DNA of 62,925 bases, filler included, from Octopus bimaculoides (taxonomy: Eukaryota): NCBI RefSeq assembly GCF_001194135.2. It is 8 parts of 8 records of this genome, joined end to end, with 100 filler letters (N's around TTAATTAATTAA, not from the genome) between each part and the next. Parts side by side here need not be neighbours in the genome. Positions count along the whole stretch, not along the records: positions 52,167 to 55,482 come from NW_026381537.1; 7 more parts are not named here. The stretch is one strand, 5' to 3'. Positions 52,067 to 55,482 of this stretch are shown here, in pieces. The position numbers were made by a program, and so were the translations under genes. Below the pieces are notes generated by a model. The model saw only the letters and a list, made by a program, of their open reading frames with translations, was not told where the DNA came from and made no database searches. How positions within the stretch are numbered: position 1 is the first letter of the stretch; the number at the start of each line of letters is the position of its first letter.

Positions 52067-52278
52067 NNNNNNNNNNNNNNNNNNNNNNNNNNNNNNNNNN
52101 NNNNNNNNNNTTAATTAATTAANNNNNNNNNNNNNNNNNNNNNNNNNNNNNNNNNNNNNNNNNNNNACCTATGTTTTTGACCAGTGGTTTTTATGAACTT
52201 TTGTAAGTTTGGTGAGTAGAGACGGAGCCTCTATCAAATATCTTTATTGTTATATCTATTTTTCTTCTAATTTTGCAG

Positions 52279-52336
52279 CTTCACATTCTGCTTCAGCTTC
52301 GTGTTCAGTAAACTGTGATTATTCACGTCCCTGCAG
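52279..52336 (+). CDS. Candidate internal coding exon 1 of an unannotated Cys-rich protein: (A)SHSASASCSVNCDYSRPC(S)
   Basis: Acceptor ttttcttctaattttgcAG and donor CAG|GTAAGA. The exon is 58 nt and only one frame is open (phase 1 to phase 2). It carries 3 Cys. Confidence 0.55.
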
Positions 52337-53269
52337 GTAAGAGCTGTTATTTCTTTCATTAACTTTTTAATTAATTAAATAGTTGAATTACTTTCTTTTC
52401 CTGGTTATTCTTTATTGAGTCTCCTCAATATGATTTCCATCGCTCATATATATCACTGTTGGTAATGCACTACATCCTCTAGTAATGTACTACATCTTTC
52501 TTCTATACACCCTCTTGGTCATACTACCATGAAAGAACAAAGGACTCAATTTTGTGGGTAACAAAGCAACCTCTCTAGAAAAATTGTTGATTTGAAGAGC
52601 ATCCAGTCTCAGATACAATACCAAATTTAGAACCGACAAGTAAGCTGTCATCCCCAACCTGTCTAGGAGTGCAGCAACTCTAAATAAGAACTCAGATCCT
52701 GATGATCCTTCCAGCCTATGACAGCATGGAAAACAGACATAAAAGATGATGAGGATAGTGTGTGCATGTGTATGTGTTCACATACATGTTCATTTACATA
52801 TCTACATACAGGTATGGCTGTGTAGTAAAGAAGGTTTAGGTTCACTCAGTTTTAGGTTCACTCCCACTGCATGAAATATTGGGAAAGAGTTTTCTACCAT
52901 TGCTCTGGGCCAACCAAAGCCTTGTTAGTGAATTTGGTAGGCAGAAAGTGAAGGGCACCCATGTGTGTGTGCATGTGCCTTTGTTTTGACATATGACAGT
53001 TGTAAACAAATATCTTTGTCATACATTATTCTGTCATTCGCTTTCATTCTTTCATGAAGACATATCTGGCTAAGGAGAAATATTATTTCAATTAGAAACA
53101 GATGAAAATTGGTGATAGAAAGGGCATCCAATCACAGAAAATCGACTTCAGTCAATTCCACCTGACATGCGCAACCATAGAAAAGTGGATGTCAGAAAGC
53201 TTCTGCTGATAACCCCCCCCCCCCACACGCTGTAAGTATTTTTTTAATTTGTGCTGTTTTCTTTTCCAG

Positions 53270-53337
53270 TGATGTGTATTCATGCCTATCAGGATCTTGT
53301 TCAACTCTCACTGAGAAGGATTTGCCTGCTAAATGTA
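53270..53337 (+). CDS. Candidate internal coding exon 2 of the Cys-rich protein: DVYSCLSGSCSTLTEKDLPAKC
   Basis: Long polypyrimidine acceptor gtgctgttttcttttccAG and donor A|GTAAGT. The exon is 68 nt, phase 2 to phase 1, in frame with the previous exon. It carries 3 Cys. Confidence 0.55.
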
Positions 53338-53981
53338 GTAAGTGACAATTTTTCATAAAATACATCATGACTTTTCTTAAACTAATATGCTACCATTCTC
53401 CGCTTCATATATGCTAGTAATAAAAAATTTAATAAAAATAATGAGAGTCTGCTATTTATACTGTTTTATTTAGAAAAAGTAAAATTAAAATACTGTTTAA
53501 AATCAAAGTTGTGTTGGAAGAATTCGACAGGGCATTACTATATTTTGTTTTTACATAGTGAGTGTAAGAAGATGAAAGTAAGTATCTTAAAATAGTACTC
53601 AGCAACATTACTGTAAAACTAAAAAGTAATGTGTCAGCTGTTGGCCTCAAATAAAAGATGTTCCATGACTAACAAATATGACTTTACTTTACTGTTGCTG
53701 TTCACTCATAGTATACCATGGCAAACTCCAGATCTACAACTTTGGTTATAAAGATCTTTGTTTAAAATATTTTTACAATAAATTAAACTCAGAATACTTC
53801 TGGTATCATTTTTAAGTTTTCTTAGCATTGAGTTACTGAGTGATTTCAGTAGTTGCAGTTTGGTACTCTGGACTTTTTTAAACATATCACAAGTTTTGAG
53901 ACCATATGTTGTGAAACTTCATGATACAATAATAAAGTTTTTACAGTTAATCACAAATGTCTGTTTTCTTAATTGTTTCAG

Positions 53982-54046
53982 AATGCTATGTGAAATGCCG
54001 TGAAGAATTTAATAATCTTCGCATAAGAAAAGACAACTGCATGTAA
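53982..54046 (+). CDS. Candidate coding exon 3 of the Cys-rich protein: (K)CYVKCREEFNNLRIRKDNC, then either M-stop (TAA 54044-54046) or a donor AT|GTAAAT after 54042
   Basis: Acceptor ctgttttcttaattgtttcAG. Only the phase-1 frame is open, matching exon 2. It carries 3 Cys. Confidence 0.5.
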
Positions 54047-54364
54047 ATATTATTTCTTTACTTCTTTTCAAATAATGGTAATGGTAAAAAGCACTTCAGA
54101 GAATGGGGTGCAAAGTGGAAGTTAAACCAGATGTTAAAACCAGGTCTCTATATAAATTCCCTGAAACTTACCCACCATTCTATGACACAATGTTGTATTC
54201 AACTGACTCTCCTGTTTTTAATTTTAGTTTTGCTATCTTAGTAGAACTATATGTATATTTATGTGTATGTATTTACATGCATATAAATATGATTGTACTT
54301 GAATGAAATGTAGCACTGGTTCTATGAGATCCATGCTATTTCAAAAATTGATAACATTCTCTAT

Positions 54365-54628
54365 ATGATCATTGAAATTATTGTTATGATCACAATACTG
54401 TTAAGATGTGCATATGGCTATGATACAAAAGATAAAGACTTCTGGTGTTCTCTGATTCAAATGACATTGCCATTTACAGTACAAACTTCTGAAAAATCAG
54501 CCAGTCATGAAATTGATTTTGCATGTAGCAGTAAAAGTGAAAGAATTGCTACCACACTTCACATGGTGTTGCTGCTGTGCACACTATTATCCTTAATCAC
54601 ATCCAAACAAAGTTCTTTAACTAATTAA
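54365..54628 (+). CDS. 87-aa ORF with hydrophobic N- and C-termini; possibly the terminal exon (from 54406) of the Cys-rich gene, with a GPI-anchor-like tail
   Basis: ATG at 54365 and TAA at 54626-54628, in non-repetitive sequence. The C-terminus is SSKSER-IATTLHMVLLLCTLLSLIT. A weak AAG acceptor at 54405 is phase-compatible with exon 3. Confidence 0.3.
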   Translation: MIIEIIVMITILLRCAYGYDTKDKDFWCSLIQMTLPFTVQTSEKSASHEIDFACSSKSERIATTLHMVLLLCTLLSLITSKQSSLTN

Positions 54629-55087
54629 TATAAAATCATTCACTGGTTGTCCAACTGCTAGCTCATAGTTTATCTTCTTCAGAACTGGCTGGCCTTGTAC
54701 CACCTCTACTCAGGTACTTCTGACACATTCATCTCTCCTCTTCCTTTTGTATCATCTACATTGTGTCCAACACCCCTCCAGGCTCTTCACTAACCAATTA
54801 TGCCCAGTCCTTCCTATCCACAATATTGTTGCTCCAGAATCTCCTCCCTGCTTTTCTCTTTCCTGTCTGTTAGTTTCATTATAATTGATACATGTCTTTT
54901 TCATCATCACTGAATAGTGATGTTTTAGGTAGGTGTCTTTCCAATGAGGGAGATATGTTGACAGATGTGTAGTGGAACTACCTATCGTCTCTAATACCTA
55001 TCACCATTAGATACAAAACTGCTATCGCCATTCTTCTCATTTAAATATAAACAAACCCGAACGTAGCGGAAAACATTAACCTTGTCA

Positions 55088-55231
55088 TCACGTGACTGAT
55101 CAATATTCGAATCGGCAACTTCTTCGAACCGTTCCCGCCAGAACACAAACTGACCAATCACGGCCCCTAATAAGGTCACGTGATAGAGTAAAATTCTAGA
55201 GCCATCAGGAGCCGATAGTTTGTTATAAATA
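55088..55231 (+). promoter_or_regulatory. Promoter-like motif cluster
   Basis: TCACGTGA at 55088-55095 and 55176-55183, CCAAT at 55154-55158, CArG box CCTAATAAGG at 55166-55175 and TATAAATA at 55224-55231. The region is locally CpG-rich and non-repetitive. Confidence 0.5.
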
Positions 55232-55354
55232 GCTTTAACTCGGTGGCCAAATTTGTCTCGGTCCAGTTTCTCTATAGAGACTGTTCCGTGTACCACACGA
55301 CAGCAGCAGCAACAATTAGCCAGCGACCACTTCAACAGCTTCGTCCAGCCAACG

Positions 55355-55482
55355 ATGACCACCGCCGTCGCCATATCAGCAACACGTTTCTACGACTACT
55401 ACCAAGCAGCCTCAATCACCACCAGCATCAACACGACTTACTATGTACACCAAACCAAACCTCCGCGGCACATCTCTCTCTT
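55355..55482 (+). CDS. Possible N-terminus of a gene downstream of the promoter cluster (MTTAVAISATRFYDYYQAASITTSINTTYYVHQTKPPRHISL...), running into a gap
   Basis: ATG in aacgATGa context about 130 nt after the TATA box, with the frame open up to the gap. It could equally be 5' UTR. Confidence 0.2.

Follow-up and report, generated by a model that had tools for sequence, protein, structure and literature searches.

A candidate small-exon gene for a cysteine-rich peptide with weak similarity to EGF-type ErbB ligands in Octopus bimaculoides

The DNA considered here lies in a window of 62,925 nucleotides (nt; the whole stretch at its full length, filler included) made of joined parts of the Octopus bimaculoides assembly GCF_001194135.2, within which we analysed the piece at positions 52167–55482 (NW_026381537.1; 3316 nt, 36% G+C), a piece with the character of eukaryotic, intron-rich DNA. 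On its + strand, three short exons chain into a single frame for a peptide with nine Cys among 62 residues, a chain put forward in an earlier reading of the same DNA (the original prediction). We consider it slightly better than an even bet that the exons are genuine and code for protein, as parts of a small gene, so far unannotated, whose product would be rich in cysteine and probably extracellular. The explanation that we favour as a whole, in which the exons encode a secreted, EGF-like, disulfide-rich module, has in our estimate a probability of about 0.5.

Two lines of evidence favour real coding exons, neither of which was part of the original prediction, namely the density of Cys in the spliced frame, which would be expected by chance only 0.02 times per 55 kb, and the retention of CpG dinucleotides within the exons. 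In addition, the peptide shows weak similarity to EGF-type ErbB ligands. The candidate is plausible, not a discovery, and its main value is as a target for RNA sequencing, for which it offers two exact junctions. If real, it would be another small disulfide-rich peptide gene overlooked by annotation based on open reading frames and homology, a known blind spot in invertebrates.

The exon chain and its spliced peptide

The chain is borne out at 52279–52336, 53270–53337 and 53982–54046, with GT/AG borders and compatible phases, and so is the cysteine-rich peptide that it encodes: the spliced frame reads (A)SHSASASCSVNCDYSRPCSDVYSCLSGSCSTLTEKDLPAKCKCYVKCREEFNNLRIRKDNCM and ends at a stop codon, and 9 of its 62 residues are Cys. 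As had been claimed, no other frame is open in exons 1 and 3; exon 2 has two open frames. A possible preceding exon (candidate exon 0, 52185–52211) is indeed phase-compatible with exon 1 and likewise has only that frame open. Most likely, the exons are the last three, perhaps four, of a small unannotated + strand gene whose start codon and signal peptide would lie past the left edge of the piece. The features are as follows, with slashes marking splice borders and splice-site scores in bits.

52185–52211, + strand: candidate exon 0, encoding xVFMNFCKF; donor TTTG/gtgagt at 52212, 9.5 bits, third best in the piece.
52279–52336, + strand: exon 1, tttttcttctaattttgcag/C...CTGCAG/gtaaga; acceptor ...aattttgcag/C, 7.5 bits; donor, 11.7 bits; product (A)SHSASASCSVNCDYSRPC, ending right after the Cys aligned to EGF C1.
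52337–53269, + strand: intron 1, in phase 2 and 933 nt long, AT-rich with few CpGs; it holds tracts resembling TG/TA microsatellites, along with (TTAA)3 and C12 runs.
53270–53337, + strand: exon 2, ttttcttttccag/T...AAATGTA/gtaagt; acceptor ...cttttccag/T, 9.4 bits; donor, 6.1 bits; product (S)DVYSCLSGSCSTLTEKDLPAKC, the putative equivalent of EGF C2–C4 with the conserved Gly (C-x2-G-x-C).
53338–53981, + strand: intron 2, 644 nt, phase 1, with AATAAA at 53419 and 53431.
53982–54046, + strand: exon 3, cttaattgtttcag/AATGC...TGCATGTAA; acceptor ...aattgtttcag/A, 5.6 bits; product (K)CYVKCREEFNNLRIRKDNCM, then the stop TAA at 54044–46.

All GT and AG dinucleotides of the piece were scored as splice sites by a weight matrix for metazoans in general, based on common knowledge of such sites and not trained on the species. 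The original prediction had described the sites as strong, which holds for the donor at 52337 (the best in the piece) and the acceptor at 53270 (the second best), whereas the donor at 53338 and the acceptor at 53982 are ordinary. The latter is nevertheless the sole downstream phase-compatible acceptor with an x-Cys frame start behind a reasonable pyrimidine tract. Exon 3 also contains a weak alternative donor, CAT/gtaaat at 54043, which scores 3.9 bits (rank 22 of 199). Read-through of the exon 2 donor gives ...PAKCSK, with a TGA stop two codons on (53343–45), and this stop together with AATAAA at 53419 and 53431 could mark a shorter alternative 3′ end of the transcript.

At the other end of the chain, candidate exon 0 starts 18 nt from the left edge of the piece, so that the 5′ end of any such gene is out of reach, and its frame has an upstream TGA stop at 52178–80, 11 nt inside the piece. 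With some uncertainty, candidate exon 0 may encode the hydrophobic end of a signal peptide that starts past the left edge. The peptide had been considered possibly secreted because the residues SASA fit an A-x-A signal-peptidase site, and from those residues alone. Neither statement is supported, since a degenerate GCTTCA repeat encodes the stretch and, with the 5′ end outside the piece, a start codon with a hydrophobic signal is nowhere visible. The repeat occupies 52278–52307, five copies (GCTTCA CATTCT GCTTCA GCTTCG TGTTCA) that form the first half of exon 1, translate to ASHSASASCS and create acceptor-like ...TTCAG motifs inside the exon.

Cysteine density and CpG retention weighed against chance

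The main competing account of the coding exons is coincidence: splice-like motifs and short open frames would happen to line up in AT-rich non-coding DNA, intronic or intergenic, and neither such an mRNA nor such a peptide would exist. We regard this as rather unlikely. Its force comes from the ease with which chains of this kind arise. In 10 Mb simulated by an order-2 Markov model of the piece, chains of three exons with at least 60 codons, at site thresholds set by the weakest of the proposed sites, occur about 35 times per 55 kb when both strands are counted. At the same thresholds the real + strand of the piece offers 14–21 alternative chains, and minus-strand gene models yield zero chains in the piece. 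A splice chain in compatible phases is therefore no evidence by itself, and the one studied here was picked as the most striking from 55 kb of sequence.

What speaks against coincidence is the content of the chain. Chance chains contain on average 3.8% Cys, compared with 9 of 62 residues in the observed peptide, and a Cys density of at least 9/62 was reached by 4 of 6299 of them, corresponding to 0.022 expected per 55 kb (binomial tail 5e-4), and by 0 of 337 in a smaller simulation.

The second line of evidence, which is independent of the cysteine argument, comes from CpG dinucleotides. Left of position 55000, the observed-to-expected (o/e) CpG ratio is 0.13 outside the exons versus 0.56 within them; 4 of the 14 CpGs in this region fall within the 191 exonic nt, where 0.73 would be expected (Poisson P=0.007), and a CpG density of at least 4/191 is seen in 0.67% of chance chains. 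All four exonic CpGs are confined to exons 1 and 3. Exon 1 carries those at 52300 (TCG) and 52326 (Arg CGT), while exon 3 holds the sole two CpGs between 53525 and 54986 (1.46 kb), both in in-frame Arg codons, CGT and CGC. In the proposed frame, three of the four thus occupy positions 1–2 of Arg CGN codons (CGT, CGT, CGC), at which both possible products of deamination would replace Arg, by Cys or by His. Protein-level constraint on the frame would be expected to keep CpGs in Arg codons in this way.

Coincidence would further have to account for a similarity to EGF-type ligands which, although weak, spans both junctions and places an intron at a hallmark position of these ligands. Under the Markov null, the joint coincidence amounts to about 1e-4 per window or less, although real DNA is patchier than this null. 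Indeed, the simulation figures are to be discounted, if not to nothing, because the null is smoother than real DNA and because the starts of exons 1 and 2 are repeat-like.

Several observations count against the coding interpretation and lend coincidence some of its remaining credit. The first 30 nt of exon 1, and with them the first 10 residues, are simple hexamer repeat, the start of exon 2 is similar to the local TG/TA microsatellite family, and two of the five splice sites in the proposed chain are average. No relative of the peptide was found among ~5.8 billion protein clusters, either with the peptide itself as query or with 106 conservative variants, aligned so as to widen the 5-mer seeding, negatives that are weakened because the annotation of the source genome may be missing from those collections. 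Metagenome contigs of JGI gave no match by peptide patterns or by an exact 32-mer, and Pfam returned zero matches for the peptide, EGF models included, even at expect values (E) of up to 10. Neither a start codon nor a signal peptide is visible in the piece, as the 5′ end lies past its edge at 52167; taking ATG 52193 in candidate exon 0 as the start gives MNFCKFASHS..., which has no signal peptide. Neither AATAAA nor ATTAAA occurs between the stop and a CpG island at 55040. We note that the poly(A) argument is uninformative, since AATAAA occurs in the introns at about chance frequency (5 copies) and not after the stop.

Resemblance to EGF-type ErbB ligands

As an unbiased survey of disulfide-rich folds, the peptide was compared by phmmer with the sequences of all solved structures (n=177,635), which gave only two or three matches. 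The top match is an EGF-like toxin from an ant, 7r6p_A, at E=0.02, or E=0.015 when the 52-residue core is used. Its alignment contains 16 identities over 34 residues, 11 of them at positions other than Cys, and crosses both exon junctions (DYSRPC/SD... and ...PAKC/K/CY). A PHD finger also matched (E=0.1–0.17), and human TGF-alpha came third (E=0.52). As controls, the reversed peptide reached E=1.1 at best and two shuffles with fixed Cys gave no match. Against a profile of eight human ErbB ligands, whose hormone sequences were entered by hand, the peptide reaches 6.3 bits, a value matched by 1 of 1000 full shuffles and by 11 of 1000 shuffles with fixed Cys, and hhalign against the alignment of the eight ligands gives P=4.6e-4 and a probability of 33%, covering C1–C5 only.

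The original prediction had recognised no known family in the Cys spacing. That judgement holds in so far as Pfam is silent and the resemblance weak, but it is softened by the central five Cys, which are similar to the A/B loops found in EGF-type ErbB ligands. The small-gene interpretation as a whole retains its exon chain and its peptide and gains the Cys and CpG excess, while losing the signal-peptidase site as a basis for secretion.

The ligands with which the peptide was compared are TGF-alpha, HB-EGF, EGF and the neuregulins, together with Spitz and Vein of insects. Taking C1-x7-C2-x4-5-C3-x10-13-C4-x-C5-x8-C6 as the reference spacing of the EGF module, the peptide shares the pattern C-x5-C-x4-C-x11-C-x-C, a loose fit that extends over C1–C5 only, with five residues in the A loop where ErbB ligands have seven. 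Also shared are an equivalent of Gly18 (CLSGSC, that is C-x2-G-x-C) and the end of the B loop, ...LPA-x-C-x-C. It has been proposed that ErbB ligands are set apart from other EGF modules by a splice site that falls between Cys 4 and Cys 5 and by nearness to a transmembrane domain (Stein & Staros 2006, PMC1618406). The first of these hallmarks appears to be shared, as intron 2 splits a single codon (A/AA, Lys) between the aligned C4 (AKC) and C5, a placement that depends on the weak EGF alignment.

The second half of the module, by contrast, departs from the ErbB ligands, and a number of differences tell against an EGF-like assignment. The spacing from C5 to C6 is x3 (C-YVK-C) or x17 rather than x8, and the C-loop of the ligands, C-x2-G-[YF]-x-G-x-R-C, is replaced by C-YVK-C. 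Gly39 and Arg41 (human EGF numbering), which are diagnostic of the family (PMC8851504), are absent, and Lys precedes the next Cys instead. A canonical EGF C-loop exon (C..G[YF].G.RC) occurs nowhere in the piece, and downstream there is no other phase-compatible x-Cys exon either. Unlike ErbB ligands, the peptide is devoid of a transmembrane or juxtamembrane segment; its frame stops 20 codons past C5, and REEFNNLRIRKDNCM, its tail, carries charged residues and no hydrophobic segment. The peptide has nine Cys, three more than the six of an EGF module and an odd total, and the proposed gene has an additional intron right after the aligned C1. Moreover, the EGF lead arose post hoc.

Secreted EGF-like peptides without a membrane anchor are known, and the peptide would share with them a small precursor that ends soon after the Cys-rich module. 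L-EGF of the mollusc Lymnaea stagnalis is a secreted EGF homologue of this kind (PMC4210270), and the EGF-like peptides of ant venom (MIITX2-Mg1a, PDB 7r6p) are secreted directly (PMC8851504). Both L-EGF and the ant toxins, which have been shown to act on ErbB receptors, keep all six Cys of the EGF module as well as Gly39 and Arg41 (PMC8851504), whereas the C-loop of the peptide is replaced. Because known secreted homologues keep the complete module, we do not file the peptide as a member of the ErbB-ligand family; at most, it would be a remodelled derivative that retains the A/B-loop hairpin. A true evolutionary link to EGF-type ligands is tentative and, in our view, less likely than not.

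Were the link true, an ErbB-ligand gene would have been remodelled into one whose product is secreted directly and differs in its C-terminal half, which would bear on the recruitment of hormone genes as toxins, pheromones and receptor modulators, as in the EGF-like peptides of ant venom. The most specific version, a lineage-specific secreted derivative of an ErbB ligand that kept the A/B hairpin and the ligand-type intron but exchanged the receptor-activating C-loop and the membrane anchor for a short, Cys-stapled helical tail, seems improbable to us. It would amount to a natural 'half-ligand', possibly an antagonist or modulator of ErbB, or else a venom, pheromone or defence peptide.

In the explanation that we favour, the exons, if expressed, would encode an extracellular module that is rich in disulfides and ~55 residues long. 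The core of this module, RPC-x5-C-x2-G-x-C-x11-C-x-C, would be a diverged hairpin of EGF-ligand type, with A and B loops that, by analogy, may be stapled by C1–C3 and C2–C4. In place of the canonical receptor-binding C-loop there would be a short C-x3-C, and behind it a tail that is charged, probably helical and closed by one more Cys; this C-terminal tail could be the partner of the two additional Cys near the N-terminus (C-SVN-C). We suggest that such a peptide, once secreted, might serve outside the cell as a ligand for, or a modulator of, an ErbB-type receptor.

Real exons need not imply descent from EGF. Orphan Cys-rich peptides are frequent in invertebrate genomes, where antimicrobial, pheromone and venom-gland peptides are encoded by few small exons, have high Cys and no detectable homologues, and are easily overlooked by annotation. 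The candidate has its small exons, high Cys and lack of a detected homologue in common with them, secretion and expression being putative in this case. An orphan, lineage-specific, secreted Cys-rich peptide whose spacing resembles EGF by convergence or coincidence would explain the Cys density and the CpG retention equally well, and would fit the unmatched EGF models of Pfam, the absence of the C5–C6 spacing, of Gly39 and of Arg41, the nine rather than six Cys, the extra intron after C1 and E-values that are borderline at 0.015–0.5. It would leave as accidents that ErbB ligands make up two of the top three matches in the scan of 177,635 solved sequences, where the controls gave nothing, and that an intron falls between C4 and C5. 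Weighing both sides, we judge an orphan peptide of this kind distinctly unlikely.

The missing canonical second EGF exon and membrane anchor might also mean that the exons are spliced but belong to no functional coding gene, being part of a non-coding transcript or of a decaying duplicate of an EGF ligand (a pseudogene) that has lost its C-loop and transmembrane exon. The lack of a counterpart in the protein collections searched is consistent with this, as is the alternative stop that read-through reaches right behind exon 2, where AATAAA follows. We nevertheless consider it very improbable, since the frame is intact across all junctions and since the CpGs kept in the Arg codons of exon 3, within 1.46 kb that is otherwise CpG-free, point to ongoing protein-level constraint on precisely the exon that is not canonical.

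Other families were considered and set aside. The C-terminal cystine knot (CTCK) has the signature CC-x13-C-x2-[GN]-x12-C-x-C-x2-4-C in PROSITE, of which only the C-x-C-x3-C end fits; the peptide has no CC doublet and matched neither CTCK in Pfam nor any CTCK structure. Leads to twin Cx3C small Tims, myticin and CS-alpha-beta defensins, the follistatin-N domain, TNFR repeats and the PLA2 C-terminus were dropped, as none of them found support in Pfam or PDB.

Repeats and neighbouring features of the piece

Imperfect TG/TA-rich microsatellites of one family lie in intron 1 (52746–52811 and 52965–52985) and in the 3′ flank of exon 3 (54252–54291). They are a source of spurious Cys-dense frames, and also of the only Rfam matches in the piece, which are to mir-297 and fall below threshold (27 bits versus a gathering score of 90); tRNAs are absent from the piece. 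Intron 1 contains in addition a (TTAA)3 run at 52367–52378, which is letter for letter like an artificial stop-codon linker between pieces but has no flanking N and was judged a natural simple repeat. Further along the same intron, a 16-nt tandem duplication (AGGTTTAGGTTCACTC, twice) at 52832–52863 and a run of 12–13 C at 53215–53227, which precedes the exon 2 acceptor by ~40 nt, are probably what is left of repeat elements.

At the right end of the piece, a CpG island begins abruptly and extends over 55040–55482, with a CpG o/e of 1.22 compared with 0.13 in the rest of the piece and a G+C content of 47%. An open frame runs on the + strand from an ATG at 55355 (MTTAVAISATRFYDYYQ...) past the right edge, and a search with its putative N-terminus gave no homologue and no Pfam match. 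The island contains a CCAAT box at ~55153, CACGTGA E-box palindromes at ~55088 and ~55176, and TATAAATA at ~55224, and has the appearance of a promoter together with the first exon of a neighbouring gene on the + strand.

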